Sequence record: LR756502.1
Reading direction: 5' to 3' (one strand)
DNA length: 64,000 bases
Part shown: piece after piece, positions 10,195-64,000 of the stretch
Numbering within the stretch: the first letter of the stretch is position 1
Layout: each line of letters opens with the position of its first letter
Translations under genes and position numbers: made by a program
Notes under the pieces: model-generated
Told to the model about the DNA's origin: nothing
Database searches by the model: none
What the model saw: only the letters and a program-made list of their open reading frames with translations

Positions 10195-10332
10195 TCACTC
10201 ATCAGCATATTCAAGAAACCCATCAATGACAGAATCAAATTCTTCAGCATACATGTTAAAGTCATCATCAGATAATAAATATCCCCACTCTTTTAACATC
10301 TGTAAATTTTCAAATTTCTTTAAGTGTTTCAT
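10195..10332 (-). CDS. N-tagged acidic microprotein (45 aa, not in ORF track)
   Basis: MKHLKKFE-NLQMLKEWGYLLSDDDFNMYAEEFDSVIDGFLEYADE; TAATG overlap with the upstream gene. Confidence 0.75.
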   Translation of the reverse strand: MKHLKKFENLQMLKEWGYLLSDDDFNMYAEEFDSVIDGFLEYADE

Positions 10333-10865
10333 TAAGATTTTATTATTATATCTATATAGTCAAATCCTTCTCTATTATAAACTATTTTATCGGATTGTAA
10401 CCCATACTTTTTTGGATCAAATTCATGAACTCCTGGTATTATCTTACTCATCTTTACTAATAACTCATCTGGCGTTAGTATTGATCTTTCACTCACATAA
10501 CTATTGTGACCACTCATCCCATGTGGTACATAGACAGATCTAATGGATTGTATATAACCACTATCTAGTAAATATTTTACCTTTGATTCTATTATTAAAT
10601 AGATTTGTTTATATTGATCCATTGTTATACAATCAAGGTTTTTCTTTGAAGGTATTGGTTCGAATCTAACCCAAACACCTCTTTCTTTTTCCGAACTATG
10701 AATACTATATGGTACTTTAAATTCACCATATTGTACAATATCGCTTATAGTTACTGGAACAGGAAAGTCATCAATATCAAATGCTTCTTTACTAATAGTA
10801 AGTAGATCTTTTGAACTTAGTCTACGATAGAATTCAGATTCATTATACTTTTTTAAGTGTTTCAT
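10332..10865 (-). CDS. N-tagged protein (putative virion internal protein)
   Basis: Starts MKHLKKYNES. Confidence 0.65.
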   Translation of the reverse strand: MKHLKKYNESEFYRRLSSKDLLTISKEAFDIDDFPVPVTISDIVQYGEFKVPYSIHSSEKERGVWVRFEPIPSKKNLDCITMDQYKQIYLIIESKVKYLLDSGYIQSIRSVYVPHGMSGHNSYVSERSILTPDELLVKMSKIIPGVHEFDPKKYGLQSDKIVYNREGFDYIDIIIKS

Positions 10866-10875
10866 TTTTGAAATT

Positions 10876-10917
10876 TTATTCTATATACTCAATTTTATTT
10901 TTCTTTAAGTGTTTCAT
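10876..10917 (-). CDS. Tag-only micro-ORF or remnant (13 aa)
   Basis: MKHLKKNKIEYIE*, directly behind TAATATATA (10922-10930). Confidence 0.55.
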   Translation of the reverse strand: MKHLKKNKIEYIE

Positions 10918-10921
10918 AAAG

Positions 10922-10930
10922 TATATATTA
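10922..10930 (-). promoter_or_regulatory. TAATATATA putative phage late promoter
   Basis: Recurrent 9-mer a few nt upstream of N-tagged starts. Confidence 0.6.
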
Positions 10931-10949
10931 TTTATCAAGTGTGTTTTTA

Positions 10950-11060
10950 TATAAGCAGGTTGGAGTATACTTGCTTCCCAAGTTAGGGTAGATGCTGAAA
11001 TCCTCACGGTCGCAATAGAGGATTGATATGTTCTGATTATTAAAGGGTTTCGGTATAACT
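10950..11060. other. GC-enriched intergenic segment with stem-loops (candidate structured RNA)
   Basis: AAGCAGG/CTTGCTT, CCC/GGG and AATCCTC/GAGGATT hairpins in an otherwise AT-rich gap. Confidence 0.3.
11028..11044 (+). repeat. 17-bp direct repeat left of the HNH gene
   Basis: ATGTTCTGATTATTAAA, identical at 11705-11721. Confidence 0.9.
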
Positions 11061-11121
11061 TAAATACCTTAAAACAAAGATACGGATAATATTTGAATCT
11101 ACCAAATAAATATATAATACA

Positions 11122-11700
11122 ATGAAGTATATAAAGGAATATAATGATTTCTTACTGGAACTTAGGAAGGTAGTAACTAGTAGTTCGGGTAGTGGTAGAA
11201 CGAAGTTTATTGATTGGGTACATGATGATCCAATTGATGCTAAGTCACCAAGTTCTGGTATTCTTCTTAAACAACAACTAAGTGATAGAGAATTCCAAGA
11301 TATGGTTGACCTATTTGATCCAGGAACACCAAAGAAAGGCATTAAAAAGCCAAGTGATAGTAGAATGGATAAGTTCAAAGTTACTATGAACAATCTACAA
11401 TTTCTTAAAGATAGAGCCAAAGAGATTGGTGAGCTAAGATGTGAATATTGTAATAAAGGACCTCTTGTTATTTATGATATTAATATGAAGGATGTAACTC
11501 CAGAAAGAATAGCTGATAGAAATTATAGATTTACTAAATTTAAATCAAGTGACGGAGCTACTTGTGATCATAAAGTTCCTCAATCTAAGGGTGGTGATAA
11601 ATTTGACTACTCAAATCTAGCAGTGTGTTGCTATAGATGTAATAAACTAAAGGATGATATGAGTTATGAGGATTGGATGGAGAGATTACGAGCACTTTAA
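11122..11700 (+). CDS. N-tagged HNH endonuclease (McrA/HNH_5-like)
   Basis: CEYC...CDHKVPQSKGG...NLAVCCYRCNKLK; starts MKYIKEYNDFLLE. Confidence 0.85.
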   Translation: MKYIKEYNDFLLELRKVVTSSSGSGRTKFIDWVHDDPIDAKSPSSGILLKQQLSDREFQDMVDLFDPGTPKKGIKKPSDSRMDKFKVTMNNLQFLKDRAKEIGELRCEYCNKGPLVIYDINMKDVTPERIADRNYRFTKFKSSDGATCDHKVPQSKGGDKFDYSNLAVCCYRCNKLKDDMSYEDWMERLRAL

Positions 11701-11704
11701 CCTG

Positions 11705-11721: not shown

Positions 11722-11738
11722 TATAAATATATAACCTA

Positions 11739-12515
11739 ATGAAATACTTAAAAGGATATAAAATATTTGAGTCATCTGTATCTAAACCAGACCTTGTGGA
11801 TAGAATCAAATGGTATTCTAACTACTTACATCAATACATGAAGGATGTTAATAAGTATACCACATCCAATCTTAATTTCGGTTTTAGTTATTCTAAACTA
11901 GAGATAAGGCAAATATTTGAAGCTGCTGAAAAACTAAATCATAACTCATCAGATGGATTCATCAGGGCTATCAGTAATGAGTTTATTACATGGTCTGACT
12001 ATATGATAAAGGATAATGGAAGAATTAGATATAAGTTAAATGACTATCGAATAGATAAAGGATATGATAATTTTACTGATGAGTATAAAGAGGAATATAG
12101 ACATGAGTTATATAAACAACCAGTTTATTGGTTAATATATGCGGCAGTTGGTAGGGATATTAAGGAATCGATAGCTGGTACTATTTGGGATATAACTCCG
12201 AAAAAGAAATTCACTGAAGAGGATAGGATCTTTATATTAGATAGCTTAGAATCGGATTATGATACGATACCACTAACATCAGCATATGCTGATGCAGATT
12301 ATATTAATAAATGTGATGAATATATAAAATCCACTGAACAGGCTAACAATGCAGGAGTTAGTGTTGTGATAAGATTACCTGTTATGAGTGGAGTAAAAAT
12401 GGATTATGATTCTGAATTTATTAATAGATTACAATCTTATTTTTCAGGGGTTCTTATATTAAACGGAAGCAACCATTCAGATTATAGATTGTATCTGCCA
12501 TTTTATCAATGGTAA
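11739..12515 (+). CDS. N-tagged protein
   Basis: MKYLKGYKIFES; TAAATATATA upstream. Confidence 0.65.
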   Translation: MKYLKGYKIFESSVSKPDLVDRIKWYSNYLHQYMKDVNKYTTSNLNFGFSYSKLEIRQIFEAAEKLNHNSSDGFIRAISNEFITWSDYMIKDNGRIRYKLNDYRIDKGYDNFTDEYKEEYRHELYKQPVYWLIYAAVGRDIKESIAGTIWDITPKKKFTEEDRIFILDSLESDYDTIPLTSAYADADYINKCDEYIKSTEQANNAGVSVVIRLPVMSGVKMDYDSEFINRLQSYFSGVLILNGSNHSDYRLYLPFYQW

Positions 12516-12532
12516 CTTAATATATACTTTTC

Positions 12533-13042
12533 ATGAAACACTTAAAGAGATATAACGAATCAGGTACTTGGAATGATTACATAGGCACTCCTAAATCAGA
12601 TAAGATAAAGGATGACAGTGTATTCTATCTACTAGATAATATAGAAGAAGAACTAATGTCTTGCTTCTTATCTTTAAAAGACTTAGTTGTATTTAATAGA
12701 GTTGAGAGTGGATGGGTATCTATCCCACATGGACATGAGAATGGAGTTAATGATGACGCTGAGTATAATAGGTTTGAATTTACAAGTTATTCTAGACCAG
12801 GTGATTTTGCTAATACAAATTACTATGAGGCTTATAGATTGTGGTTTGCTATTAATGACCAAAAGGAACTTATAGATCATGATGGTATTAACTTTGTAAA
12901 AGATAATGATTTACTATTATTATCTGATATATGTAAAGAGCTAAATGATGCAGTTAGTAAGGTAGAGAATATATGTCATTGTGATATAGTTACTAATATT
13001 GATAATGGTGGAGTTGATGTAATAGTATATGCTAGAAAATAA
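12533..13042 (+). CDS. N-tagged protein
   Basis: MKHLKRYNES; TAATATATA at 12518-12526. Confidence 0.65.
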   Translation: MKHLKRYNESGTWNDYIGTPKSDKIKDDSVFYLLDNIEEELMSCFLSLKDLVVFNRVESGWVSIPHGHENGVNDDAEYNRFEFTSYSRPGDFANTNYYEAYRLWFAINDQKELIDHDGINFVKDNDLLLLSDICKELNDAVSKVENICHCDIVTNIDNGGVDVIVYARK

Positions 13043-13050: not shown

Positions 13051-13518
13051 ATGAAACACTTAAAGACATATAAACTATATGAATCCAACAATGAAGTATT
13101 AGATTATATTGGTGAGATATTACATGATATAGAAGATGATGGATTTGAAGTTAACTATTATGTTAATAGAAATTACACAATTAATATTGATATATCATAT
13201 CTATCACAAGATGGATATCAAAGCAAATTTCTAGGCATTGACCATGATAGAAAATCATTTAGTTGGACTGATATATCAGGATCAATAGAACATATATCGA
13301 GTTATTTAGAAGATTCATCATATGAATTCGTTGAGATACAATATTACTCAAGAACATCAAGGGATTATGTTATATGTGATGATATTAACGATATGGATGG
13401 AGAATCGATTGGAGCAGAATTGATGTTAGGAACATATGATTGTAGAGTAACATTTGGTACTAAATACGAAGCAAGGTCATTAAAAACTGGAAGCGGAGGA
13501 TACTTAACAGATATATGA
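13051..13518 (+). CDS. N-tagged DILxDLxDxG-family protein
   Basis: MKHLKTYKLYES; IGEILHDIEDDGFEV...FSWTDISGSIEHISSYL. Confidence 0.7.
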   Translation: MKHLKTYKLYESNNEVLDYIGEILHDIEDDGFEVNYYVNRNYTINIDISYLSQDGYQSKFLGIDHDRKSFSWTDISGSIEHISSYLEDSSYEFVEIQYYSRTSRDYVICDDINDMDGESIGAELMLGTYDCRVTFGTKYEARSLKTGSGGYLTDI

Positions 13519-13994
13519 AACACTTAAAGAGTTATAATGAATCATGGATGGATAGAGTTGAAGGACCTGACCCCTACAAGGATGAGGTGATGTCAACTAT
13601 CGAAGATATATTTATTGATGCTAAGGATAATGGTGTTAGGGTTGTTGTTAATAATCACGATGCTAATAAAGATGATATAGAGAATAAGGAAATATATATC
13701 TTCCTAGATAAATATGTAACTGAACATAAGAGTGAGTTACTTATGTCTGATGTTAGAGATTCATTTGAAAGACTTAAAGAATATATGATTGAGGAGAGTA
13801 TTGAATTTGATTATGCTTTATTTGAGTTAAAGACACTTAGATCTAAGATTGGTTCTAAGATAAGTGGTGGTGGTCCTAATCTTCGTATATCAAGTGGTCC
13901 TAATCTTCGTATATCAAATGATATTAAAGATTTTTTATGGGCTAGTCCATCAGTTATGTTTGGTCATATTAAAATAGTAGTGAAAATTAAATGA
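13515..13994 (+). CDS. N-tagged DILxDLxDxG-family protein
   Basis: MKHLKSYNES; IEDIFIDAKDNG; 24-bp tandem duplication at 13870-13917. Confidence 0.7.
   Translation: MKHLKSYNESWMDRVEGPDPYKDEVMSTIEDIFIDAKDNGVRVVVNNHDANKDDIENKEIYIFLDKYVTEHKSELLMSDVRDSFERLKEYMIEESIEFDYALFELKTLRSKIGSKISGGGPNLRISSGPNLRISNDIKDFLWASPSVMFGHIKIVVKIK
13870..13917 (+). repeat. Perfect 24-bp tandem duplication, in frame
   Basis: GTGGTCCTAATCTTCGTATATCAA x2, giving GPNLRIS twice. Confidence 0.95.
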
Positions 13995-14767
13995 AACACT
14001 TAAAACCATATAAAATATTTGAATCAAAGAAAGATATTAAAGATAGGATATCTGTTGTAAAGGATTTCCTAACAGAGTTAATTGATGAGGGATATTATAT
14101 TACTTTTGAAACTGTACAAAATGGTACAAGATTAATAGTAAATATAACTAAAGGTAACTCTACTATATTTCATTGGAGTGATATTAAGGATGAGATACTC
14201 AGATTAATTGGACTATCTGATGATAATGGATTAATCTTTAGACACATGGGATATAATTCAGGTAGGAATGTATTTGGTGATAAAGTTAATTCATTTGAAA
14301 CTGATGAGGATATGTTCCTTGTATATTTAGGATTTGATATTAACTATGATGATAAGGAGTTCCACTTAGATAGTGAATCAGTTGAGGACTATTTATATTC
14401 TCTTAGAGATAGTGGGTCTTCACCTATTAAAGAAAATGTTACGAACATTACTAGTGTAAGGGTAGAAACAACTAACCTATTTGTATCTGTACTAAGTAAA
14501 GAACATGAGATAATGGGTGTTGCTAATATGTATATCAGAGGTGATGGATATAGATGGGAAGATATTAAGAATGAATTGATTAAGATACAAGATACATTAA
14601 ATACGATGACTAGTAATTCTTATGTATTGAGAATAGGTAGAGTTAAGGATATATTAAGTAACTTATTAGTTGTACATGAGCATGTATCGAATACTATTGA
14701 TAATGTAGATTCTGAATTAAAGAATGGTAAAATAGCTGATATGGAAATAATAATAAGACATAAATGA
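13991..14767 (+). CDS. N-tagged DILxDLxDxG-family protein
   Basis: MKHLKPYKIFES; VKDFLTELIDEGY...FHWSDIKDEILRL; second RWEDIKNEL repeat. Confidence 0.7.
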   Translation: MKHLKPYKIFESKKDIKDRISVVKDFLTELIDEGYYITFETVQNGTRLIVNITKGNSTIFHWSDIKDEILRLIGLSDDNGLIFRHMGYNSGRNVFGDKVNSFETDEDMFLVYLGFDINYDDKEFHLDSESVEDYLYSLRDSGSSPIKENVTNITSVRVETTNLFVSVLSKEHEIMGVANMYIRGDGYRWEDIKNELIKIQDTLNTMTSNSYVLRIGRVKDILSNLLVVHEHVSNTIDNVDSELKNGKIADMEIIIRHK

Positions 14768-15135
14768 AACACTTAAAGAAATATAATGAGAATTTCTTAT
14801 ATGATAAGAAATTCTCCGAGAGATATGGTATCAATCTTCAAGAGCTTCAGGATATCTGTAAGTATATACTTCAGGAGTTAGCAGATGAGGGATATGATCC
14901 ATATGTTGTTGTAAATGATGATACTATTACAGTTAGTATAGATGGTGTGAATGATTATCAAGTATTCACTATTGAGGAGATGGAGGAACACATCAGTCGA
15001 TTGGAAAGATATATAGGAGAGTTTGGTTACAAAGAGTTAGCGGGTGTTGTCAATTGGAGAAAGTATGTGAGTGATCGTGCGCCCAGTGGAAATTTAGTAA
15101 TTATTTATAAGAGAACAGGAATCCCAAGTATATGA
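14764..15135 (+). CDS. N-tagged DILxDLxDxG-family protein
   Basis: MKHLKKYNEN; CKYILQELADEGY...ISRLERYI. Confidence 0.7.
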   Translation: MKHLKKYNENFLYDKKFSERYGINLQELQDICKYILQELADEGYDPYVVVNDDTITVSIDGVNDYQVFTIEEMEEHISRLERYIGEFGYKELAGVVNWRKYVSDRAPSGNLVIIYKRTGIPSI

Positions 15136-15566
15136 AACACTTAAAGAGATATAATGAATCAACATATAACCAAGTTGATATGGTCAATGACCTAAAGGAT
15201 ATGCTATATGATATGATTGACTTAGGCTTCTATACTAGAGTTAGTGAAGAGAAAGGTCTTATTACAGTTTGTATATCTAGGTCATTCCTTACATTAAGAA
15301 ATATTAAAGGGTTTATTAGAAGTGAGGAAGAGTTAAATGCTTTGAAGGAACTATTAACTAGGGTCAATGAATATGGCAAGTCTTGTGAGCATTTAGTTGA
15401 TAGAACATGGCTTGCTAGGGTAAATAATCTAAGTGATGGTTTAATGAGTGGGCAGTCTATGATGAAAACCCAGCTTAATTATGATTCCTTTAATAAGTTA
15501 ATGAATGATAATAGATGTACGATGTATATAACAATGTACCCTAAAAATAGCAGAAATGTTTTTTAA
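15132..15566 (+). CDS. N-tagged DILxDLxDxG-family protein
   Basis: MKHLKRYNES; LKDMLYDMIDLGF. Confidence 0.7.
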   Translation: MKHLKRYNESTYNQVDMVNDLKDMLYDMIDLGFYTRVSEEKGLITVCISRSFLTLRNIKGFIRSEEELNALKELLTRVNEYGKSCEHLVDRTWLARVNNLSDGLMSGQSMMKTQLNYDSFNKLMNDNRCTMYITMYPKNSRNVF

Positions 15567-15617: not shown

Positions 15618-16154
15618 ATGAAACACTTAAAAGGATATAAAGTATTTGAGGATTCACAACGTGAAAAGGATCTACAATGGGCAATAGATAATGGTTTTAT
15701 TGATCAAAATGATTCCGATAAAACTAAAGATATATTAGCCGACCTTATAGATTCAGGTTTCATAATTGATATAGATGGTGGTGCTGAATCCCTTCTTACC
15801 GTTAGTATTAGTAAATCAGATGATACTCGTGATTTCCCAGAAGACTTTGATGATGATGGTGAAAGGTTCTCGAATAATGATTTTGAATTTACATACGATG
15901 AAGTTAAACCAGATATTGATGAGTTGATTAGTCAGTTATCTGATAAGTATCCAAAATATAGTATCTACTTAACACCATCTGGTGGGTATGATTCTCAAGA
16001 TATGGATGAGTTTATATCCAATAGTTTTTCATTAGATGATATATCAAGAGTAATAATATATTTTTACAGGGGATTTTCTGCAGAATCGATAGAGGGAATA
16101 GTATGGCCCCAGAGCTATTTAACCACGTTAAAACCTTTACCATTTAAACCTTAA
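15618..16154 (+). CDS. N-tagged DILxDLxDxG-family protein (acidic)
   Basis: MKHLKGYKVFED; TKDILADLIDSGF; TAATATATA at 15602-15610. Confidence 0.7.
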   Translation: MKHLKGYKVFEDSQREKDLQWAIDNGFIDQNDSDKTKDILADLIDSGFIIDIDGGAESLLTVSISKSDDTRDFPEDFDDDGERFSNNDFEFTYDEVKPDIDELISQLSDKYPKYSIYLTPSGGYDSQDMDEFISNSFSLDDISRVIIYFYRGFSAESIEGIVWPQSYLTTLKPLPFKP

Positions 16155-19519: not shown

Positions 19520-20068
19520 ATGAAACACCTAATCCAATATAAAATATTCGAAACCAAGGATATTTCTTCTGAAGTTAGACAGACAATTAATGATATGTCA
19601 CTAGATCTAATAGATAGTGGACTCATAGCTAACATAGAAACATATTTCGTGCACTTCCCCGAAACATGGGTGAACGGAAGGTATGTGCGTAGTGGAACTT
19701 TACATCCTTCTGAAAGAAGTGGATATTGTTTTGTTGATATTATAATATGGAAACATAAAGGTGACTATCTTCATATCCCATATACCCTTGATAGAGAGTG
19801 TATTGATTTCCTACTAAGTCTAAATAGTTATATGTTATCAAATGAATATAAACTAAAAAATGTAACCATAAATACTGGTGGTTCAGAACCAAATCTACAC
19901 GTTAGTCACGCTAAAGTAATTGAATATGATAAGCGACCATTTGCTGATGTGAAATTGACTATTATCGATAATATTGAGAAACTATATACTGAAACAGTTG
20001 AAGAAGTATCGATTTGTTTCTTTGGCTATTCCGGAACATCCCCAAACTATAAGGATCCCAACAATTAG
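19520..20068 (+). CDS. N-tagged DILxDLxDxG-family protein
   Basis: MKHLIQYKIFET; INDMSLDLIDSG; TAATATATA at 19504-19512. Confidence 0.7.
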   Translation: MKHLIQYKIFETKDISSEVRQTINDMSLDLIDSGLIANIETYFVHFPETWVNGRYVRSGTLHPSERSGYCFVDIIIWKHKGDYLHIPYTLDRECIDFLLSLNSYMLSNEYKLKNVTINTGGSEPNLHVSHAKVIEYDKRPFADVKLTIIDNIEKLYTETVEEVSICFFGYSGTSPNYKDPNN

Positions 20069-20119: not shown

Positions 20120-20299
20120 ATGACAATACTACTATACACACTATTAATTATATTTTGGGCCTTATGTGCTTATGGATCTATTATGTTCTATAAATGGCAA
20201 TTCAAAGATATTACTATTGGTATAACTATATTATCAATTGTATTAGCTCCTATTGGATTAATGGCTGGTATTATTAACTACTTACTCGAAAAGAAGTAA
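20120..20299 (+). CDS. Small 2-TM membrane protein (59 aa, not in ORF track)
   Basis: MTILLYTLLIIFWALC...LSIVLAPIGLMAGII; TAATG coupling. Confidence 0.55.
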   Translation: MTILLYTLLIIFWALCAYGSIMFYKWQFKDITIGITILSIVLAPIGLMAGIINYLLEKK

Positions 20300-20520
20300 T
20301 GAAAGTAATCTGTATATATGATAAGAACTTAATCGGTGGTAAAAGTATGTCTTATACCAAAGGTAAATGGTATGAAGTTCTATCCGACCAAGAGGCATTC
20401 AATAAAAATCATCAGTTTTATATAAAGTCAGATAATGGCACATACCCAGCAGTAGAAAGAAAGAATTTCATGACACTAGATGAATATAGAAACAACAAAT
20501 TAAAAGAAATAGGAATATGA
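20299..20520 (+). CDS. C-tail SH3-like protein (xVxC family)
   Basis: MKVICIYD...TKGKWYEV; ends RNNKLKEIGI. Confidence 0.7.
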   Translation: MKVICIYDKNLIGGKSMSYTKGKWYEVLSDQEAFNKNHQFYIKSDNGTYPAVERKNFMTLDEYRNNKLKEIGI

Positions 20521-20621
20521 TACAAATTTCTTTATCAGACTTCTTAGTTAATGGAGATGACTTTTCCTTCTTATTAAAGAAATCAAATAAACCCTCATAT
20601 GTTTTTATATTTTTCATTGTT

Positions 20622-25108: not shown

Positions 25109-25149
25109 AACATTATATATTAATATATAATGTTATGAAACATTTGAAG
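25094..25149. repeat. Perfect 56-bp palindrome spanning two divergent gene starts
   Basis: CTTCAAATGTTTCATAACATTATATATT|AATATATAATGTTATGAAACATTTGAAG. Confidence 0.95.
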
Positions 25150-54781: not shown

Positions 54782-55264
54782 ATGAGACATATAAAGTATT
54801 ATAGGGGTTTTGAGTCAACGTCATTAAAAGATGATATTTTGTTATATGTTCGTGATATACTTTCCGATATTTCTGATGATGGGTTTGGTATTGAGTTTAG
54901 TATTAAAAGTATGATGCCTACAAAGTATGTATCATCTAGACTAATGCCTAGTAGGGTTAAGGATTTTAGTGTTAGAATATCAGCTCCTATTAGTCCAAAA
55001 TTGAAATTTAGTAATGATTTTAAATTTGGTGATGTTAGTGGGTGTATAAATCATCTAATATCATTCATGGCAGATAATGGATATAAACAAGGTGGTATTT
55101 ACTCTGATTGGACTGGTGTCTGTCCAAGTGAGAAATCACATGCTTATAAAGTATTTACTGCAGACCGTGGTGATAAACTCATTTATCTGAATATTGATAG
55201 TCTTAATTCAGATAGTATAATATCAAACTATATAGAGATTTACTTTTATAATAAGGTGCTTTAG
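54782..55264 (+). CDS. N-tagged DILxDLxDxG-family protein (start revised to 54782)
   Basis: MRHIKYYRGFES; VRDILSDISDDGF...FKFGDVSGCINHLISFMADNGY. Confidence 0.7.
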   Translation: MRHIKYYRGFESTSLKDDILLYVRDILSDISDDGFGIEFSIKSMMPTKYVSSRLMPSRVKDFSVRISAPISPKLKFSNDFKFGDVSGCINHLISFMADNGYKQGGIYSDWTGVCPSEKSHAYKVFTADRGDKLIYLNIDSLNSDSIISNYIEIYFYNKVL

Positions 55265-56355: not shown

Positions 56356-56658
56356 ATGAAACAATCAAGTTGGTTTAAAACGGAAGTGGACTTTGAAAGT
56401 TCTTTCAAGTTCTGGTTCGCACTTATGTGGCAAAATTCATATATTCAACTTTTCTCTGTTGGATTCATCTTATTACTTATGGAGTTAATAAAATTTGGAT
56501 GGGTATTGGATACTGTATCTGAAAATTTCTCATATGGTGTTTTTGGTGGTATCTTCACACTATTAGGAATGGTTATACCACTTGCGGTTACTTCAGTAAT
56601 TGGGTATAAGGGATTTTATCAATTTTGGAAAGATATAAAATTTGGAAAAACTAGATAA
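56356..56658 (+). CDS. 2-TM membrane protein
   Basis: Two hydrophobic helices; TAATATATA at 56324-56332. Confidence 0.65.
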   Translation: MKQSSWFKTEVDFESSFKFWFALMWQNSYIQLFSVGFILLLMELIKFGWVLDTVSENFSYGVFGGIFTLLGMVIPLAVTSVIGYKGFYQFWKDIKFGKTR

Positions 56659-57272
56659 TGAGAAATATTAAATCATATAAAGACTTCGCTAATGAGGAAG
56701 TAAACTGGAGAAAAGGAATGGCAACCGCTGCTCTAGGCGCATCACTTGCTATGTCATCCCCATTGATTGCAAACGGTAATGAAATTATTGATAAGATTGA
56801 AAATGTGTCAAGTAAATCAAAGAACTCAAATGATGATATGTTGAATAACATATTGGGTGAGATACATTCAAATATTAAAAGTACTGATAGTGCTAAGTAT
56901 ATTGAGTTATTTGATAAGTTATCATCACATCTATCCAAAGAGTATGGTTATGAGATAATTGCTAGGGATATTCCTAAGTTGGATAAAGAGACTATGTCTG
57001 ATATGAGCTTAGCTGAGTTAATGGGTTGGTTGGGTTCTATTTGTTTAGCTATATGTGGTGTCCCACAAGCTTGGATGTCCTATAAGGATAAACATTCTGA
57101 AGGAATTTCTTGGGCCTTTATTCTATTATGGGCTTTTGGTGAAGCATTTGCTTTGGCTTATGTGTATAATAAGTTGGATTTGCCTTTAGTTATGAACTAT
57201 CTAACTAATATTTTGATTGTTGCTATTATACTTTATTATAAGATAAATCCAGGCAAGAAGTCGGATTTATAA
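56658..57272 (+). CDS. N-tagged PQ-loop (SemiSWEET-like) membrane protein
   Basis: MRNIKSYKDFANEE; C-terminal GWLGSICLAICGVPQAWMSYKDKHSEGISWAFILLW... 3-TM PQ-loop unit. Confidence 0.8.
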   Translation: MRNIKSYKDFANEEVNWRKGMATAALGASLAMSSPLIANGNEIIDKIENVSSKSKNSNDDMLNNILGEIHSNIKSTDSAKYIELFDKLSSHLSKEYGYEIIARDIPKLDKETMSDMSLAELMGWLGSICLAICGVPQAWMSYKDKHSEGISWAFILLWAFGEAFALAYVYNKLDLPLVMNYLTNILIVAIILYYKINPGKKSDL

Positions 57273-58153: not shown

Positions 58154-58597
58154 ATGAAATATCTATGTAGATACAAAGTATTTGAGTCCTTCAATGAAGA
58201 CCCGTCATCTGATATTGCATTGGAGGTAAAGGATGTACTGTGTGATTTGATTGATGATAATTACTTTACAGTAAATGTCGCATATAACAAATTAGGTGAT
58301 ATAAACCTTATAATAAGTATTTATAAGGAGGGGTTTAAGAGGTTTAAATGGACTGATAGTTTAAGTGATGAAATATTGGTTAATCTCAAATCTCACTTAT
58401 CGGATAGGTACTCAATAAAATCTATTAGAGGTATTATTGAAGTTGATGCAGTATTAAATGGTAACGGAGATTCATATAATCCTGTTAAAGAGTTTACGGT
58501 ATATTCATCCGGATATAGCCCTGATCCCGACTCATATAACTTTGATTTTTTTGAGATTGATGTGTATTTGGCGGAGAATAAATTACTCTCCGCCTAA
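58154..58597 (+). CDS. N-tagged DILxDLxDxG-family protein
   Basis: MKYLCRYKVFES; VKDVLCDLIDDNY...FKWTD. Confidence 0.7.
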   Translation: MKYLCRYKVFESFNEDPSSDIALEVKDVLCDLIDDNYFTVNVAYNKLGDINLIISIYKEGFKRFKWTDSLSDEILVNLKSHLSDRYSIKSIRGIIEVDAVLNGNGDSYNPVKEFTVYSSGYSPDPDSYNFDFFEIDVYLAENKLLSA

Positions 58598-58606: not shown

Positions 58607-59281
58607 TTATTTAGTTTTTATTAAAATTTCATCAACCATTCCATAGGCCTTAGCCTCTTCTGCTGTCATCCAATAATCTCTATCACTATCTGCCCAAACT
58701 TTATCATATGTTTGTCCACTGTGCTCGGCGATAATGTCATATAATTCCTTTTTTAATTTTTGAATTTCGCGAGCGGTTATTTCAATATCTGTTGCTTGTC
58801 CACTAGCTCCACCAAGTGGTTGGTGAATCATTACTCGCGAATGTTTAAGTGCTGCTCTTTTTCCTTTAGTTCCAGCACACATTAAAACAGCTCCCATTGA
58901 CGCAGCCATACCTGTGCATATAGTTGCAACATCTGGTGTTATGTATTGCATAGTATCGTAGATACCAAGTCCAGCATAAACTGAACCACCTGGGCTATTT
59001 AAATATATTTGAATATCTTTTTTAGCATCAACAGATTGTAGGAATAATAGTTGTGCTTGGATAATGTTTGCTACTTGGTCGTCAATTCCGGTCCCTAGGA
59101 AAATAACTCTATCCATCATTAGTCTAGAGAATACATCCATCTGAGTTATATTCAACTGGCGTTCCTCGATGATGTAAGGTGTTACATTTGAAATGTTGTG
59201 TTTTGTGTATGAGTCAAAGGTATTTCCGTTGATACCTTTATGCTTTGTGGCATACTTTCTAAATTCATTGTTATCGAACAT
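58607..59281 (-). CDS. clpP: ATP-dependent Clp protease proteolytic subunit (Bacteroidota-type)
   Basis: TPYIIEERQLN..MDVFSRLMMDR, NSPGGSV, GMAASMG (Ser), MIHQP (His) and DRDYWM (Asp). Confidence 0.97.
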   Translation of the reverse strand: MFDNNEFRKYATKHKGINGNTFDSYTKHNISNVTPYIIEERQLNITQMDVFSRLMMDRVIFLGTGIDDQVANIIQAQLLFLQSVDAKKDIQIYLNSPGGSVYAGLGIYDTMQYITPDVATICTGMAASMGAVLMCAGTKGKRAALKHSRVMIHQPLGGASGQATDIEITAREIQKLKKELYDIIAEHSGQTYDKVWADSDRDYWMTAEEAKAYGMVDEILIKTK

Positions 59282-59697: not shown

Positions 59698-59967
59698 TTA
59701 TAGATACTTTATTTGTTTTAGGTCTCCACTTGGTAGGTTCTGTCCTATGAATTCACCAGATTCAAATCCAAGGTCAGTATTCATCTTACTCACAAATATC
59801 TGTGGGGTTTTACCAGAGTCTCTGAATGATAATATTTCATCCTCATATTGATTAACGATTTTATTTATATCGTTTGGACTAAGGTTATGCTTTTTAAGTC
59901 CTGATATTACATCTTCAATATACTCTTGTTTTGTCCAGTATGATTCGTAGGTTTTTATATACTTCAT
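59698..59967 (-). CDS. N-tagged small protein
   Basis: MKYIKTYES; TAATATATA upstream. Confidence 0.65.
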   Translation of the reverse strand: MKYIKTYESYWTKQEYIEDVISGLKKHNLSPNDINKIVNQYEDEILSFRDSGKTPQIFVSKMNTDLGFESGEFIGQNLPSGDLKQIKYL

Positions 59968-60874: not shown

Positions 60875-61393
60875 ATGAAGTACATAGAACTATTCGAAAG
60901 ATTTTATAACCCAAGTAAAGATATAAAAGATAAATTAGACTCTATAATTAAAGATTTATTGAATAGGTATAAGGGAGGTAAGTCGTTTTTTGATGCTCTT
61001 GATGATTCTATAAAGGATATAACTAATCAGGATATGACTCTTGCTTTATTAAGGGGTAATACAAATGAGTGGATTGCAACATCCGGTGAGTTTGGTGATA
61101 CGATATATAAGCTATGGAAGTCTGGTAAGTTTAGGTGTAAGGGTTTGGTTGTATTTAATGGTAAGATGATGACAAATGAAATTGGTATTAATAATTGGTA
61201 CCCAATTGACTTTGAATTAGATAATAAGGAGTTTTTATATGTAGATGACTCTTATTTCTCTGGCAGTACTGCTAGAAAAATTGATAACTTCCTAAGTGAG
61301 TATAACTCAAGAGTTAAAAGCATATCTGTTATATATGATGGATCCAAGGAAAAAAATAAAATGGTTAAGTCCTTTTTTAGATATTATAAATGA
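60875..61393 (+). CDS. N-tagged type I phosphoribosyltransferase-like protein
   Basis: MKYIELFER; FLYVDDSYFSGSTA matches the PRPP-binding loop. Confidence 0.7.
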   Translation: MKYIELFERFYNPSKDIKDKLDSIIKDLLNRYKGGKSFFDALDDSIKDITNQDMTLALLRGNTNEWIATSGEFGDTIYKLWKSGKFRCKGLVVFNGKMMTNEIGINNWYPIDFELDNKEFLYVDDSYFSGSTARKIDNFLSEYNSRVKSISVIYDGSKEKNKMVKSFFRYYK

Positions 61394-62259
61394 AATACTT
61401 AAATAAATATAAATTATTTGAGTCAGAACAATCTTATTATGATAGAATTGAGGCTGAACAAGAAGAACTTAATAAATTCAAATATGGATCTGTTAAGGTT
61501 TGGGCTAAAGAGATATATGATAAGTTTAGAAAAGTAGAGTCTGAGATTGCATCAAAGATGATAAATGTTGATGGATCTGAGGTCTATCTGGCTAATAATT
61601 CACAACATTCTATAAAACTTGGATTCGGACGTAGCTATACTAAACTGAACTCTCTTATAGATAAATATAAAACCGCAGAAGGTCTTATATCCTATCTAGA
61701 AAAGGCAAATGATGAGATTAATAACATAAGAAAATCACTCGAAGGCCGATGGGATTATATTTCTAGAAAGAATGGTAAAAAAGGAACATCTGATGAGTAT
61801 GATAAGATAAAAAGGATGAGAGAGTTGATGGATGATTTTCAAGAACCATGGTCTATTTACAGAGAGCTAAAACAAGTTGACTTGGACATTTATCATGATA
61901 TTCTTTGGATGGTATCTGATTTAGCTGATGATTTAGATATGGAATCTGCAATTTCACACCTTGAGTTATGGAGAGGACTCGATATTCAATTAATTATGTT
62001 TAAGAAAGGAACCGAACCATATATTGAATGGGTGGTCGCGAATCATCAACAGACCACAAAGGGTAATATTAGTTTTAGAAAACTTGGATCTCTCTATACA
62101 AATGTATTTCTATCTAATATAATTATACCTGAGGATGAATTTAATAAAGTTTATGATATTGAGAATAGATTAAAACAATACTTCGATTCTGTTACAATAA
62201 GATATTCTCATAATAGATCTTGTATCTATATTAATCTCTGTAATCAAAAGGACATATAA
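61390..62259 (+). CDS. N-tagged helical protein
   Basis: MKYLNKYKLFES; coiled-coil-like N-terminal half. Confidence 0.65.
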   Translation: MKYLNKYKLFESEQSYYDRIEAEQEELNKFKYGSVKVWAKEIYDKFRKVESEIASKMINVDGSEVYLANNSQHSIKLGFGRSYTKLNSLIDKYKTAEGLISYLEKANDEINNIRKSLEGRWDYISRKNGKKGTSDEYDKIKRMRELMDDFQEPWSIYRELKQVDLDIYHDILWMVSDLADDLDMESAISHLELWRGLDIQLIMFKKGTEPYIEWVVANHQQTTKGNISFRKLGSLYTNVFLSNIIIPEDEFNKVYDIENRLKQYFDSVTIRYSHNRSCIYINLCNQKDI

Positions 62260-62552
62260 TGAAATACTTAAATACATATAAATTATTTGAGAGTATCTCC
62301 AAATATCCTGATGGGTTTGGTCGGTATTTAGATAACGATGATATACAAGATTCTCTTCAATATGATATAGGTGACATGGTTTGGGTTAGAGATTGGAGTG
62401 ATGTGCCATGTCAGGTTATGGATATAAAGGTTGGTGTGGATGTGTCTGGTAGTCCACACAATGAAATATTAGTATACTTTTACTATGTTAGAAATTCAGA
62501 GACAGAAGAAATAGAAAGGTTTAGATCATTTAAATTAAGTGAAATAGAATGA
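62259..62552 (+). CDS. N-tagged KOW/SH3-like protein
   Basis: MKYLNTYKLFES; YDIGDMVWV. Confidence 0.65.
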   Translation: MKYLNTYKLFESISKYPDGFGRYLDNDDIQDSLQYDIGDMVWVRDWSDVPCQVMDIKVGVDVSGSPHNEILVYFYYVRNSETEEIERFRSFKLSEIE

Positions 62553-63091
62553 AGTACTTAAAGACATACTCCTTATATAAAATACTTGAGAGCACTTTAA
62601 CAGATGTTAATTTTCCAAATGCTGAGGAAAAAATAAAAGACATATTGTCATATTTGATTGATGATGAGTTTTCTATAGATGTTGACTCTTATGAATTGGG
62701 TGAGTTCCAAAGGCTGCCATCCAGAATTTTATTAAACATACCAGAGTCTATAACTCAAAACATGGAATGGGATCCACTACCAATTCTAGTTATTATTATT
62801 GAATATTTTGATAATCAAGTGGAAACACAAAGAACATTCACAATTGATGAAATTGACCAACACATAAAAGAGTTAATTAATCAAATGAGTGATGATTATA
62901 CATTTTTTCAATATTGGAAGTCTTATTCAGAGAGTACTAATTTAAATTTAAAATTAATTGGTGATTATTCTAAATGGTGTTCAAATATTGATAAGGTGTC
63001 TGAAGGTGATGATTGTGAGTTAAACTACATAAGACTAGAATTTATAAAAAATACTAATCTAGTGTCAAAATCCACAAATTCCATCCAATAA
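62549..63091 (+). CDS. N-tagged DILxDLxDxG-family protein
   Basis: MKYLKTYSLYKILES; IKDILSYLIDDEF...FTIDEIDQHIKELINQM. Confidence 0.7.
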   Translation: MKYLKTYSLYKILESTLTDVNFPNAEEKIKDILSYLIDDEFSIDVDSYELGEFQRLPSRILLNIPESITQNMEWDPLPILVIIIEYFDNQVETQRTFTIDEIDQHIKELINQMSDDYTFFQYWKSYSESTNLNLKLIGDYSKWCSNIDKVSEGDDCELNYIRLEFIKNTNLVSKSTNSIQ

Positions 63092-63620
63092 CAATAACTG
63101 AGTGTATTGTCTCTGGTATTGCCATTCCCGGAAAAAATTTTAATGCTATTAACGGACCAACAACCATAGCAACTGCAAATGTTGTATGTGTCTGCCATTC
63201 TTTATATTGTAGGTGCTTTCTATTAAGATGAGCAAATAAGAAAACTATTAGTGGGTAAGCGAAGAAGTAAAGATACGCAGTGACATTATGAATATCGTGT
63301 GTCATATCTACTACTCCGGTGATAAATAAAAATGTGGATGTTAGTATAAATCCTAACTTTAGAAAGTTTGTATATCTTTCATGTAAACGTGTGTGATGTT
63401 TTATAAAAAGCATTACATTTATAAGAATAGAGACTGATAATATAGCGACACAGCTATTCCATATCCATCCTAGTTTCTTATCAACTCCCCAGAATGAAAG
63501 TTGAATATCTGTAAGCTTAAACTCAGTAACATTATAGCATAGTATGAATACTCCAATGAAAAGAAATATTGAAATGATGGTCTGCCACCTTCTAAACTTT
63601 TTAATATCAGAAATATCCAT
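63054..63620 (-). CDS. Multi-pass membrane protein (DUF998-like, tentative)
   Basis: 5-6 TM helices; LSFWG...HNVTAYLYF. Confidence 0.55.
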   Translation of the reverse strand: MDISDIKKFRRWQTIISIFLFIGVFILCYNVTEFKLTDIQLSFWGVDKKLGWIWNSCVAILSVSILINVMLFIKHHTRLHERYTNFLKLGFILTSTFLFITGVVDMTHDIHNVTAYLYFFAYPLIVFLFAHLNRKHLQYKEWQTHTTFAVAMVVGPLIALKFFPGMAIPETIHSVIVIGWNLWILTLD

Positions 63621-63659
63621 ATACCTTGTTATACTTAAATTTAGTATTTATGTTACATA

Positions 63660-63667
63660 CAAATATA
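63660..63667 (-). promoter_or_regulatory. Bacteroidota-type TAnnTTTG promoter
   Basis: TATATTTG on the minus strand. Confidence 0.55.
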
Positions 63668-63707
63668 CTGATTTTAATTTAAACAATAAAACAATAATAT
63701 ATAGTAT

Positions 63708-64000
63708 ATGATAATTAAAAGGTATAATGAATTTGTATTTGAGAATAAATCACCATTACTAGTTCTGCAAGATAATATTGATCGAGAGTTGATAGATATA
63801 ATACAATCGATAATACCTAGTGGTAAAATATTAGAAATATCTTGTGGAAACGGAGCGGACTCTATTGAGTTGGATAGATTAGGATATGATGTAACTGCTA
63901 CAGATTCAAATAAAGATTATGTTGAAAAGGCTGGTGAGTTTGTTAGGAGTCTTCATCATGATACAAGAGATGAGTTTCCGTTTGATGATGAACAATTTGA
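63708..64000 (+). CDS. N-tagged class I SAM-dependent methyltransferase (runs off the window end)
   Basis: MIIKRYNEFVFEN...KILEISCGNGADS...VTATD...FPFDDEQF; TAATATATA at 63695-63703. Confidence 0.8.
   Translation, partial: MIIKRYNEFVFENKSPLLVLQDNIDRELIDIIQSIIPSGKILEISCGNGADSIELDRLGYDVTATDSNKDYVEKAGEFVRSLHHDTRDEFPFDDEQF

Follow-up and report, generated by a model that had tools for sequence, protein, structure and literature searches.

The reference system is that of the internal proteins of phage T4, basic proteins that carry an N-terminal capsid-targeting sequence and enter the host together with the phage DNA. In T4, targeting depends on two aromatic residues at i/i+3 and processing on an I-x-E site (PMC9026906), and the IP loci vary between T-even phages (PMC3012670). 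A sequence-only reading of bases 1-64000 of LR756502.1 (the window, 64,000 nt of the 642-kb genome of an uncultured Mahaphage; Al-Shayeb 2020) had proposed that 53 ORFs share a T4-like tag of this kind and form a library of virion cargo. We find the observation to be real and, in fact, wider than described, whereas the interpretation is only partly supported.

Using regular-expression scans and a 13-residue tag HMM, we found 48 nonoverlapping ORFs in the window scoring at least 8 bits at the N-terminus; one weaker ORF and three short or alternative-start ORFs bring the count to about 51. The tag is not confined to the window: 148 of 979 ORFs genome-wide (15%) reach 8 bits, in comparison with 0 of 979 shuffled N-termini. 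Of the 117 matches scoring 10 bits or more genome-wide, 115 lie at the start, 111 of them at residues 1-3 and 4 at a slightly downstream alternative start, and only 2 are internal. The proposed tandem arrays, the ATGA/TAATG overlaps and the upstream TAATATATA are all present. Instead of one tag, we distinguished three classes: MK[HY][LI]KxYK[IL]FES (long), MK[HY]L[KR][KR][YF]NES (short) and MK[HY][LI]Kx[FY]E[SDG][FY] (third). The tag, 10-13 residues in length, ends in Glu in 43 of 47 long-class cases, the other 4 having Asp, and in 41 of 41 short-class cases, with a hydrophobic P3 residue and Ser/Asn at P1'; in the third class, the P3 residue is not hydrophobic.

The first tagged ORFs lie on the reverse strand: a short one at 10195-10332 (-) (45 aa, MKHLKKFENLQ), a regular-expression hit below the 60-aa size of our gene calls, and 10332-10865 (-) (177 aa, MKHLKKYNESEFY, short class, 19.8 bits). 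They are followed by 11122-11700 (+) (192 aa, MKYIKEYNDFLLE, 18.1 bits), which has a C-terminal HNH nuclease domain (PF01844, 4e-08, aa 139-177) and an AATATATA-type promoter-like element 5 nt upstream; 11739-12515 (+) (258 aa, MKYLKGYKIFESS, long class, 22.3 bits; element 5 nt upstream); and 12533-13042 (+) (169 aa, MKHLKRYNESGTW, 20.9 bits; element 6 nt upstream). A core alpha/beta family, defined by its own HMM, begins with 13051-13518 (+) (155 aa, MKHLKTYKLYESN, 21.7 bits) and continues with 13515-13994 (+) (159 aa, MKHLKSYNESWMD, 21.7 bits; ATGA overlap), 13991-14767 (+) (258 aa, MKHLKPYKIFESK, 23.8 bits; two core domains), 14764-15135 (+) (123 aa, MKHLKKYNENFLY, 18.1 bits), 15132-15566 (+) (144 aa, MKHLKRYNESTYN, 20.7 bits) and 15618-16154 (+) (178 aa, MKHLKGYKVFEDS, 20.1 bits; element 7 nt upstream). 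Further downstream is 19520-20068 (+) (182 aa, MKHLIQYKIFETK, 19.7 bits; element 7 nt upstream).

The next group is mostly on the reverse strand and starts with a short regular-expression hit at 20468-20617 (-) (49 aa, MKNIKTYEGLF). The core-family members here are 20622-21692 (-) (356 aa, MKYLKRYKIFESN, 23.0 bits; element 6 nt upstream), 21705-22223 (-) (172 aa, MKYLRRYNENISD, 18.8 bits), 22220-22666 (-) (148 aa, MKYLKKYKIFEEG, 23.0 bits) and 23595-24008 (-) (137 aa, MKHLKTYNESISK, 22.1 bits). ORF 22663-23577 (-) (304 aa, MKHLKKYKIFENH) is an in-frame fusion of two tagged units, the second tag MKYLKAYKLFES starting at aa 125, and scores 23.0 bits at the N-terminus and 22.4 bits internally. 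The longest tagged protein is encoded at 24005-25108 (-) (367 aa, MKHLKTYKIFESA, 25.8 bits; element 5 nt upstream). An inverted repeat at 25079-25164 (2 x 43 nt, 84%) holds two divergent promoter-like elements and the first codons of both flanking tagged genes. The ORF on its other side, 25135-25572 (+) (145 aa, MKHLKLFESFPYT, third class, core family, 19.3 bits), was used for homolog searches and AF2 modeling: it has 214 homologs with E<=0.001, of which the 16 whose sequences were read all carry the tag, and the model, based on a 128-sequence alignment, leaves residues 1-12 unstructured (pLDDT<50) ahead of a predicted helix at 14-35 and a beta-beta-alpha-beta unit. The group ends with the weakly tagged 25633-26316 (-) (227 aa, MKHITPHKLFENK, 10.1 bits), 26328-26675 (-) (115 aa, MKNLKGFNENFVP, 15.3 bits) and 26717-27208 (-) (163 aa, MKYLAPYKLFEGH, 15.5 bits; element 5 nt upstream).

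On the forward strand, we then found 28053-28439 (+) (128 aa, MKYLKRYYESTET, 15.7 bits; element 4 nt upstream), 28948-29358 (+) (136 aa from the tag Met, MRHLKSYIIFESN, 20.4 bits) and 32285-32773 (+) (162 aa, MKHLKTYESKHPI, 16.9 bits; element 5 nt upstream), interspersed with the core-family members 28436-28897 (+) (153 aa, MKHLRRYNESFRT, 18.5 bits), 29355-29933 (+) (192 aa, MKHLTTYKIFESV, 23.4 bits), 29941-30426 (+) (161 aa from the tag Met, MKHIKKYKIYEND, 21.5 bits), 30967-31749 (+) (260 aa, MKHLKSFVNVPLV, 13.5 bits; element 4 nt upstream) and 31746-32273 (+) (175 aa, MRHLKKYNESTKN, 19.4 bits). ORF 34154-35059 (+) (301 aa, MKHLQKYNIFESN, 23.5 bits) has three core-domain hits at E<=0.001 and is followed by core-family members 35065-35556 (+) (163 aa, MNHLKTYNIFEKE, 21.7 bits), 35553-36029 (-) (158 aa, MKHLTTYKVFEGK, 18.7 bits; element 5 nt upstream) and 36113-36490 (+) (125 aa, MKFLKNYKIYEAM, 15.4 bits), and then by 36490-37263 (+) (257 aa, MIHLTSYKIFETH, 17.0 bits).

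In the following stretch, 39909-40379 (+) (156 aa, MRHIKAYKIFESD, 20.5 bits) and 44127-44954 (+) (275 aa, MKYINSYKLFEES, 17.8 bits; element 5 nt upstream) belong to the core family, 40802-41347 (+) (181 aa, MKYIRKIFEADNT) has a weak or degenerate tag below the threshold (6.7 bits), and 41861-42517 (+) (218 aa, MKYLEKYKIFESY) scores 20.2 bits. ORF 42885-43442 (-) is tagged (185 aa, MKRIKTYKVFEA) if started at the tag Met, which is internal to a longer ORF running to 43721 and scores 12.2 bits, with a promoter-like ttatatata 6 nt upstream. The remaining cases are 49604-49858 (+) (84 aa, MKHIRSYKIFDSI, Asp in place of Glu, 20.3 bits; element 4 nt upstream); 51733-51987 (+) (84 aa, MKYLESYQIFESK, 17.3 bits); 54782-55264 (+) (160 aa, MRHIKYYRGFEST, core family, 17.7 bits; element 6 nt upstream); 56658-57272 (+) (204 aa, 16.2 bits), a PQ-loop membrane protein (PF04193, 4.7e-12) with MRNIKSYKDFANEE followed by hydrophobic segments and 3 predicted TM segments; 58154-58597 (+) (147 aa, MKYLCRYKVFESF, core family, 18.4 bits; element 4 nt upstream); 59698-59967 (-) (89 aa, MKYIKTYESYWTK, third class, 19.5 bits; element 4 nt upstream); 60875-61393 (+) (172 aa, MKYIELFERFYNP, 12.6 bits; element 5 nt upstream); 61390-62259 (+) (289 aa, MKYLNKYKLFESE, 19.1 bits); 62259-62552 (+) (97 aa, MKYLNTYKLFESI, 20.6 bits); 62549-63091 (+) (180 aa, MKYLKTYSLYKILES, core family, 15.9 bits); and 63708-64000 (+), which runs off the window end (MIIKRYNEFVFEN, 9.7 bits; element 4 nt upstream).

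Of the payloads listed in the sequence-only reading, the MTase, ART and PRTase were not confirmed. The "MTase" ORF 38031-38924 is a false positive, as its MKTLIRYPGGK is position 1 of the D12 Dam domain, and Pfam finds no ART or PRTase among the tagged ORFs of the window, only the HNH nuclease and the PQ-loop protein. Genome-wide, the tag also sits on SET, GNAT and lysozyme proteins; on the HNH, GNAT, lysozyme and PQ-loop proteins, it lies outside the Pfam domain. The 6 phage-side SET proteins whose sequences were read (63-100% identical to one another) all keep the tag, while the 12 cellular Flavobacteriia-type homologs read (52-61% identical) lack exactly those residues. Both synonymous codons are used at every conserved position of the tag, indicating selection on the protein, and tag strength is the same (17.2 bits) with or without an own promoter, although codon skew at codons 2, 3 and 9, together with near-leaderless spacing, shows some nucleotide-level constraint. 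Tagged proteins are at most 367 aa, mostly soluble and depleted of TM segments (3.4% vs. 12.3%, P = 6e-4), and the arrays vary between sister phages, as the T-even IP loci do.

The in silico checks suggested beforehand all came out compatible with a T4-like capsid-targeting sequence. The genome has a T4-type head module with a gp20-type portal (PF07230, 1.3e-57), a gp23-type capsid protein (MCP; Gp23, 3.7e-28) and, between them, a gp21-type head maturation protease (phrog_207, 6e-28) in which the T4 gp21 His85 and Ser140 motifs are conserved (GEFDHPD, VSSRAAG). The protease domain, aa 1-170 of L004:11272-13371, is fused to a scaffold with at least 10 strict repeats (about 13 by eye) of YSEY[IL]AEN, each an (I/L)-x-E site, and residues 4-10 of T4 IpII/IpIII are 5/7 identical and 7/7 similar to this core, in register. 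The long tag has Y7/F10 and I9-F10-E11. The tag HMM ranks T4 IpI 1st, IpIII 12th and IpII 15th of 1,576 T4 Met-start peptides, but the similarity is marginal (6-10 bits, E>=0.09) and the three T4 proteins count as roughly one independent observation. The element AATATATA, shared by tagged and structural genes, lies 0-35 nt upstream of ORF starts in 199 of 339 genomic occurrences (9.3 expected) and precedes 6 of 8 T4-late orthologs, in comparison with 3 of 18 replication orthologs; a gp55-type late sigma factor is also present.

The tagged ORF L001:16294-16539 is homologous to MCP residues 32-118 (E=2e-9), and its FNE, followed by D, aligns in register with the conserved INE, followed by N, of the MCP, so that homology starts right after the Glu in both. 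On the other hand, the T4 gp23 cleavage site aligns to a Glu-less stretch of the MCP, and the MCP peptide at Met32 scores only 2.3 bits with the tag HMM. In multidomain relatives, internal domains are often still preceded by LKxYNES linkers without a Met (22/70 in comparison with 14% in shuffled controls), which fits polyprotein processing.

A rival reading and several observations have to be weighed against capsid targeting. The phage also encodes ClpS, a ClpC-like unfoldase and ClpP, and a degron function thus cannot be excluded. About 30% of the tagged ORFs (44/148) are simply paralogs of the one alpha/beta-domain family. The tag is portable, and five ORFs have the core domain without a tag. 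Five tagged proteins, including the PQ-loop protein, have TM segments, for which the SPN3US ejection protein gp47 sets a precedent, and the tagged proteins are acidic (median pI 5.6), unlike the basic T4 internal proteins. A set of 148 cargo species would also be unprecedented.

With moderate confidence, and from sequence alone, we consider the best explanation to be that the motif M-K-[H/Y]-[L/I]-K-x-[Y/F]-(0-3 residues)-E-[S/N] is a portable N-terminal propeptide working like the T4 capsid-targeting sequence. The analysis itself establishes that the tag exists, is strictly N-terminal, portable and under protein-level selection, and that the genome has the T4-type head module with its protease and the shared promoter element; docking, cleavage, encapsidation, injection and late timing are our inferences from these. 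In this view, tagged proteins are probably made late, together with the head proteins, many from near-leaderless transcripts driven by an AATATATA late-type promoter and the rest from translationally coupled arrays. The aromatic/aliphatic face of the tag (L4, Y/F7, F10) would dock the protein onto the scaffolding core built by the protease-scaffold fusion protein and, after the shell closes, the protease would cut after the invariant Glu. The freed cargo, consisting of small, mostly soluble, acidic proteins, about 30% from the one alpha/beta-domain family and the rest ORFans plus a few enzymes (SET, GNAT, HNH, lysozyme, Toprim-like), would stay in the head and enter the host with the DNA. That would make the tagged proteins of this phage a hugely expanded, though unproven, version of the internal-protein system of T4.

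The sequence record LR756502.1 is an unannotated 642,428-bp "uncultured phage" genome with 30% GC, one of the four largest genomes of Al-Shayeb et al. 2020, placed in the Mahaphage clade and predicted to infect Bacteroidetes (PMC7162821); the window corresponds to its bases 1-64000, with 100% identity. The remaining genome was analyzed separately in twelve pieces (coordinates prefixed L001, L003, and so on), using a simple longest-ORF gene call that gave 979 ORFs. As described in the sequence-only reading, a shared N-terminal motif is present in the window, and a regular expression search found about 45 ORF starts with it. A 13-residue HMM built from 124 tags scored at least 8 bits on 48 window ORFs and on 148 of 979 ORFs genome-wide, in comparison with 0 of 979 shuffled N-termini, and the score distribution was bimodal with a peak at 14–22 bits. 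Of the 117 matches scoring 10 bits or more, 111 start at residue 1–3 and 4 at a slightly downstream alternative start; only 2 are internal, one of them being an in-frame fusion of two tagged units (22663-23577). The tandem arrays, the ATGA/TAATG overlaps, and the upstream TAATATATA reported earlier were also confirmed. We identified three tag classes, MK[HY][LI]KxYK[IL]FES (47 ORFs), MK[HY]L[KR][KR][YF]NES (41 ORFs), and MK[HY][LI]Kx[FY]E[SDG][FY] (about 30 ORFs). The Glu is found in 43 of 47 ORFs of the long class, the other 4 having Asp, and in 41 of 41 of the short class, and the next residue is mostly Ser or Asn. In addition, a small group with the tag variant M[KR]NIKxYxDFxNEE[VI]xW followed by a hydrophobic segment consists of window ORF 56658-57272, L001:31990-32634, L010:30849-31472, and L011:16926-17384. 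Three of the four score as transmembrane (TM) proteins, L011:16926-17384 being hydrophobic by eye only, and one member has a PQ-loop; if tags mean encapsidation, these would be membrane-active ejection proteins.

To distinguish protein-level from DNA-level conservation, we tabulated the codons under the motif. Every conserved residue uses both or all of its synonymous codons, for example K5 AAA 55/AAG 39, E11 GAA 29/GAG 19, and L4 TTA/CTA/CTT/TTG, and selection is therefore on the peptide. On these grounds, a nucleotide-level repeat or recombination cassette was rejected as the main cause. Some positions are nevertheless skewed beyond the genomic bias: codon 2 is AAA in 82% against 61%, codon 3 is C-ending in about 50% against 22–33%, and codon 9 is ATA in 23 of 24 cases. 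A secondary nucleotide-level constraint near the start therefore exists.

An iterated HMM search with the tag masked (4 iterations) found an alpha/beta domain in 44 of 148 tagged ORFs (26 of 48 in the window). The domain is introduced by an acidic helix, [IV]xD[IL]LxDLxDDG[FY], beginning at about aa 24; it also occurs in 5 untagged ORFs, and some ORFs hold 2–3 copies. The tagged ORFs are thus not a single family sharing homologous sequence beyond the motif. The other 104 are mostly ORFans but include an HNH nuclease and a PQ-loop membrane protein in the window and SET, GNAT, phage lysozyme, further HNH, and Toprim-like proteins elsewhere, the tag in each case lying outside the Pfam domain. Other payloads proposed in the sequence-only reading did not hold. 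The D12-class Dam methyltransferase (38031-38924, minus strand, 6.4e-26) was rejected as a tagged payload because the match is the normal start of the Dam domain, and the ART and PRTase payloads had no support from Pfam or PHROGs; ORF 38954-39598 (minus strand) is a riboflavin kinase (1.8e-22). Both genes sit between the tag arrays, and neither is tagged.

The clearest case of a portable tag is the SET-domain methyltransferase L003:44299-44742, of which we read 18 homologs. The 6 phage-side proteins, 63–100% identical to one another, all begin M[KR]Y[LI]Kx[FY]E[SND]FD[YF]D, whereas the 12 cellular homologs (52–61% identical; sources include Flavobacterium, Winogradskyella, and a Bacteroidota MAG) begin MDNNTIDA... 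or MSPDQNKIEV..., and homology starts immediately after the tag. The tag was therefore grafted onto a host-derived gene and then maintained, which rules out pure paralogy; the case also suggests a Flavobacteriia host and points to recent host-to-phage gene transfer. An AF2 model of the core domain from a 128-sequence alignment was of low confidence (pLDDT 54), with residues 1–12 unstructured, followed by a helix at 14–35 and a beta-beta-alpha-beta unit, and a Foldseek search of the PDB with it gave nothing with E<=0.001.

We then studied the distribution of the tag and the core family. The family has 214 homologs in a word-indexed search and 2214 cluster representatives at 50% identity in an exhaustive metagenomic search, all unannotated, and in 117 of 126 representatives the first domain is preceded by an N-terminal tag. 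An exact degenerate DNA pattern for the long tag hit 30 IMG/VR stretches (contigs of 6–476 kb, GC 25–32%), each carrying 1–7 tagged ORFs. In contrast, the same pattern hit only one contig in 185,579 species genomes, which we regard as a mis-binned fragment of the same phage lineage. The 18-kb contig JAIOYD010000005.1, labeled as a "Rickettsiaceae bacterium" MAG, carries tagged ORFs and the lineage's giant "MSNHK..LVFFN" protein, taken to be structural from its size, and is almost certainly a mis-binned huge-phage fragment. Among 50,697 phage records, only LR756502.1 (29 places) and its sister LR745206.1 (16 places) carry the tag together with the helix, and tblastn searches with the core family and with tag plus helix likewise hit only these two. 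The 735-kb LR756501.1 has only degenerate versions, in 9 of 240 sampled ORFs, and the first 50 kb of Tenacibaculum phage PTm1 has none (0 of 54). We found no cultured phage carrying the tag, and literature searches for the motif strings or for Mahaphage N-terminal motifs returned nothing relevant.

The capsid-targeting interpretation requires a gp21-like prohead protease, and the presence of one had been set as a test. Searches with T4 queries, Pfam, and PHROGs identified a T4-type head module at about 222–229 kb, containing a gp20-type portal (PF07230, 1.3e-57), a 699-aa head maturation protease (L004:11272-13371, genome 225272-227371; phrog_207, 6.1e-28), and a Gp23-type major capsid protein (MCP; 3.7e-28), the protease lying between the other two. 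A gp17-type terminase, a sheath protein, and a gp55-type late sigma factor (L004:3128-3493; phrog_234, about 1e-5) are also present; phmmer searches with T4 gp55, gp33, and gp45 gave no significant hits, and gp55 was recovered only through PHROGs. While the Pfam S77 match of the protease is below threshold (4.6e-4), a three-sequence profile against T4 gp21 gave 1.6e-07 with both catalytic motifs conserved, GEFDHPD aligning with GELNHPP (His85) and VSSRAAG with VSSRGLG (Ser140). The protease is fused to a scaffold-like region conserved in three Mahaphages (orthologs L051:9795-11918 and L052:9487-11910). In this region, a strict pattern finds 10 tandem 14-residue repeats, NIxYSEY[IL]AENLDK, and we count about 13 by eye in the alignment, each repeat containing an [IL]-A-E motif, the classical gp21 site type. 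A PDB sequence search with the protease-scaffold profile matched only a designed coiled coil, in the repeat region. Residues 4–10 of T4 IpII and IpIII, read from the T4 record, are 5/7 identical and 7/7 similar to the repeat core YSEYIAE, in register, which hints that peptides like the T4 capsid-targeting sequence (CTS) imitate a scaffold self-association and cleavage motif.

The surroundings of the head module add further tagged genes. Two lie directly upstream of the portal gene and are absent at that position in the sister phage, and they are thus variable accessories. Just downstream of the MCP, a protein with an NFACT-R RNA-binding domain (1.7e-14) and a 458-aa "peptidase" (phrog_4191, 3.2e-64), at L004:15253-15942 and L004:15975-17351, lie inside the module, next to an acidic poly-Asp protein with a tag variant (L004:17351-17869, MKLKKYKDIFEK) that is conserved in the sister phage. 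Elsewhere in the genome, tagged ORF L001:16294-16539 (genome 80294-80539; 81 aa) is homologous to residues 32–118 of the phage's own MCP (E=2e-9) and is a partial duplicate of the MCP N-terminal arm. Its tag end, ...SFNE/D (the slash marking the junction), aligns in register with the MCP's ...QINE/N, within a segment conserved in three Mahaphages as WM[AS]EYAE[FM]H[QS][IM]NEN, and in both proteins homology begins right after the Glu. This is what one would expect if "hydrophobic-N-E" marks the boundary between propeptide and mature protein, both in the MCP and in tagged proteins, the tag then replacing the putative MCP propeptide exactly at the conserved junction. However, the MCP peptide itself is not tag-like by HMM (2.3 bits), and the T4 gp23 cleavage site aligns to a Glu-less stretch of the MCP and is uninformative.

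The element AATATATA occurs 339 times in the genome (e.g., window 11113-11121 and 12518-12526), and 199 of the occurrences lie 0–35 nt upstream of an ORF start on the correct strand, where 9.3 are expected. The spacing is bimodal, at 4–8 nt and 18–28 nt. The far spacing precedes portal, terminase, sheath, MCP, and many ORFs longer than 1000 aa, while the near spacing is effectively leaderless and precedes 141 genes, of which 71 are tagged. The element is present upstream of 6 of 8 orthologs of T4 late genes, baseplate orthologs included, against 3 of 18 orthologs of replication or early genes. With a gp55-type sigma factor present, it is most simply a late promoter akin to that of T4, as inferred from sequence alone. 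The Bacteroidetes host-type -7 motif (TAnnTTTG) was a weak discriminator of temporal class (6.8% vs. 12.2%, P = 0.066). The 67 tagged genes lacking the element are mostly coupled to the upstream gene by ATGA/TAATG overlaps or by gaps of 15 nt or less, and their tags are equally strong (17.2 bits). At window 25079-25164, an 86-nt inverted repeat (43-nt arms, 84% complementary, with a perfect inner part) spans two divergent promoter-like elements and the first five codons of both flanking tagged genes (24005-25108 and 25135-25572). Window 1-10000, on the other hand, contains about 33–40 small plus-strand ORFs with no tags and no AATATATA elements, which looks like a separate, possibly early, gene class; several share weak paralogy (for example, 3679-3978, 4585-4791, and 20299-20520). 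The tagged proteins have a median length of 158 aa and a maximum of 367 aa; 3.4% have a predicted TM segment in comparison with 12.3% of size-matched untagged ORFs (P = 6e-4), and their median pI is 5.56 in comparison with 6.05 (P = 7e-4).

The closest known system is the CTS carried by the T4 internal proteins IPI, IPII, and IPIII, and by Alt as a short propeptide, and removed by the prohead protease gp21. T-even internal proteins are described as highly diverse with only a conserved CTS; its first 10 residues suffice for targeting, which depends on residues 4 and 7, whereas processing depends on residues 8 and 10, and Asp at position 10 blocks cleavage but not targeting (PMC3012670; PMC9026906). 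As in T4, a short N-terminal sequence is shared by otherwise unrelated, fast-evolving small proteins encoded in variable loci, in a phage with a gp20/gp21/gp23-type head module and a gp55-type late sigma factor. The long class has hydrophobic and aromatic positions L4/Y7/F10 and an I/L-F-E end, a pattern compatible with the i/i+3 spacing of the two aromatic or hydrophobic T4 targeting positions and fitting the (L/I)-x-E site, although its Glu directly follows the second aromatic instead of aromatic-I-A-E; the short class has only L4/[YF]7 and ends in Y/F-N-E with an aromatic at P3, and the third class has a variable P3. The tag HMM ranked T4 IpI first, IpIII 12th, and IpII 15th among 1576 Met-start peptides in all six frames of T4, but the scores were only 6–10 bits (E>=0.09) and the three proteins share one CTS; the resemblance is real but marginal. 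The phage differs from T4 in having about 148 tagged genes (15% of the proteome) against 3–5, three length classes, putative cargo that is acidic rather than basic, a third of it from one paralog family, and a protease fused to the scaffold. In the giant phages phiKZ, 201phi2-1, and SPN3US, large capsids carry dozens of packaged proteins (more than 50 head proteins in SPN3US), a gp21-related protease cuts after Glu with few other determinants, identical N-termini on the diverged paralogs SPN3US gp53/gp54 were likened to a CTS, and one ejection protein has a TM segment (PMC5694885; PMC9026906). However, those propeptides are mostly 80–130 residues long and not a single short consensus shared by more than 100 genes, and the lineage is chimallivirus-type, not the gp23/Mahaphage MCP lineage. 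The MuF-type polymorphic toxins of temperate phages reportedly follow the same logic, a constant N-terminal head-associated module presumed to bring a variable C-terminal effector into the phage head for delivery (Jamet et al. 2017), but MuF is a folded domain of about 300 aa, not a 12-residue cleavable peptide, and typically occurs as a single copy per genome.

The interpretation of the tag as a capsid-targeting sequence was partly supported. The tag, its strictly N-terminal position, its grafting onto a host-derived gene, the selection on the peptide, and the T4-type head module are established by the sequence analysis, whereas binding to the scaffold, cleavage, the specificity of the protease, packaging, injection, and late expression are inferred. 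We consider it about as likely as not that the tag is a cleavable capsid-targeting propeptide. In this view, tagged proteins would be expressed late together with head proteins, docked on the repeat-built scaffold core, cleaved after Glu by the gp21-type protease, retained in the head, and injected. Physical capacity is not limiting: T4 packs about 1000 internal protein molecules and SPN3US more than 40 MDa of ejection proteins, and one to ten copies of each of 148 proteins of about 18 kDa would come to roughly 3–30 MDa. In multidomain relatives of the core family, internal domains are often still preceded by ...[LI]Kx[YF]NES or ...KTNES linkers, usually without a Met (22 of 70, against 14% in shuffled controls). 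This fits polyprotein processing at tag sites and is hard to reconcile with a purely initiation-related role or with an N-degron role.

Other explanations appear less likely. The tag could be a protein-level address for something other than the capsid, either a docking peptide for another common partner or, most concretely, a turnover signal giving about 150 accessory proteins a programmed short life. The phage encodes a full-length ClpP (window 58607-59281, minus strand; PF00574, 1.6e-77), a two-ring ClpC/ClpB-type Hsp100 with a UVR motif (L008:26544-28667, plus strand), and a ClpS adaptor next to the terminase (L003:41052-41333, minus strand; 1.6e-18), with ClpS also present in a syntenic metagenomic contig. 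The tag is N-terminal, unstructured in the AF2 model, portable, and under protein-level selection, and removing 2–3 residues would, by N-degron rules, expose Tyr or Leu, classical ClpS N-degrons. However, ClpS reads a free N-terminal L/F/Y/W, whereas Met-Lys N-termini are not processed by methionine aminopeptidase, and thus no N-degron is exposed without an unknown peptidase. The most conserved features (the aromatic at 7, F10, and the Glu plus Ser/Asn, extending to residue 12) are not needed for ClpS recognition, and the Hsp100 has only about 65 residues before its first AAA module, such that the ClpS-binding N-domain seems to be missing. The shared promoter-like element with structural genes, the match to the gp21 site logic, and the MCP-derived tagged ORF are also left unexplained. 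We consider this reading unlikely.

Equally unlikely in our view is that the shared start is mainly an expression cassette, new genes being captured by in-frame fusion behind a resident late promoter plus the first roughly 12 codons, kept because they suit SD-less initiation, leaderless or by termination-reinitiation, in a Bacteroidetes host, with no posttranslational role for the peptide. The finding that 71 of 148 tagged genes have the AATATATA element 3–9 nt from the ATG while most others are ATGA/TAATG-coupled, the codon skew, the acquisition of the start region as a block in the SET case, and the palindromic promoter plus first codons shared by one divergent pair are consistent with this. 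Against it, residue classes (Y/F, L/I, E/D) are conserved rather than nucleotides, and 70 of 141 near-leaderless genes, including >1000-aa ORFs that are probably structural by size and orthologs of the T4 baseplate genes gp25 and gp5, have no tag. Tag strength does not depend on the initiation mode, and the Glu-Ser end and the aromatic spacing have no obvious role in initiation. The least likely is simple paralogy, the arrays being one family expanded by tandem duplication with occasional domain accretion and the tag the best-conserved N-terminal segment of its domain. The shared domain of the 44 ORFs, the high proportion of tagged first domains in the metagenomic family, and the low confidence of the AF2 model, which does not exclude a structural role for residues 1–12, are in line with it. 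But 104 tagged ORFs lack the domain, the 5 untagged ORFs have it, unrelated Pfam domains and the SET proteins carry the tag, and the linker between tag and helix varies from about 2 to 50 residues, unlike a fixed structural element.

The concept of a CTS on diverse internal proteins is established for T4. What is new is its apparent expansion to about 15% of a proteome in an uncultured Bacteroidetes huge-phage lineage, the three length classes, the grafting onto host-derived enzymes, the possible polyprotein processing, and the protease-scaffold fusion whose repeats resemble the T4 CTS core. A more far-reaching possibility, which we consider rather unlikely, is that the phage devotes these genes to a "pre-loaded proteome": more than 100 different CTS-tagged proteins, among them host-derived enzymes re-addressed by grafting a 12-residue tag and tandem-domain polyproteins cut at internal tag linkers, would be docked on the scaffold, trimmed, and injected with the DNA, making the capsid a general protein-delivery device with an evolvable, modular address code. 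If the tag is a capsid-targeting sequence, this lineage would carry by far the largest known set of virion-delivered proteins, which would help explain what some of the many "extra" ORFan genes of huge phages are for: proteins that act before any phage gene is transcribed, for example in anti-defense or host takeover. It would also supply a natural library of more than 2000 protein clusters sharing one short address, a clear case of a host gene being re-addressed by tag grafting, and a second, independent CTS for protein-packaging technology, which is currently T4-only. Even if the capsid reading is wrong, a 12-residue motif under selection on 15% of a proteome is an unexplained sorting or turnover code.
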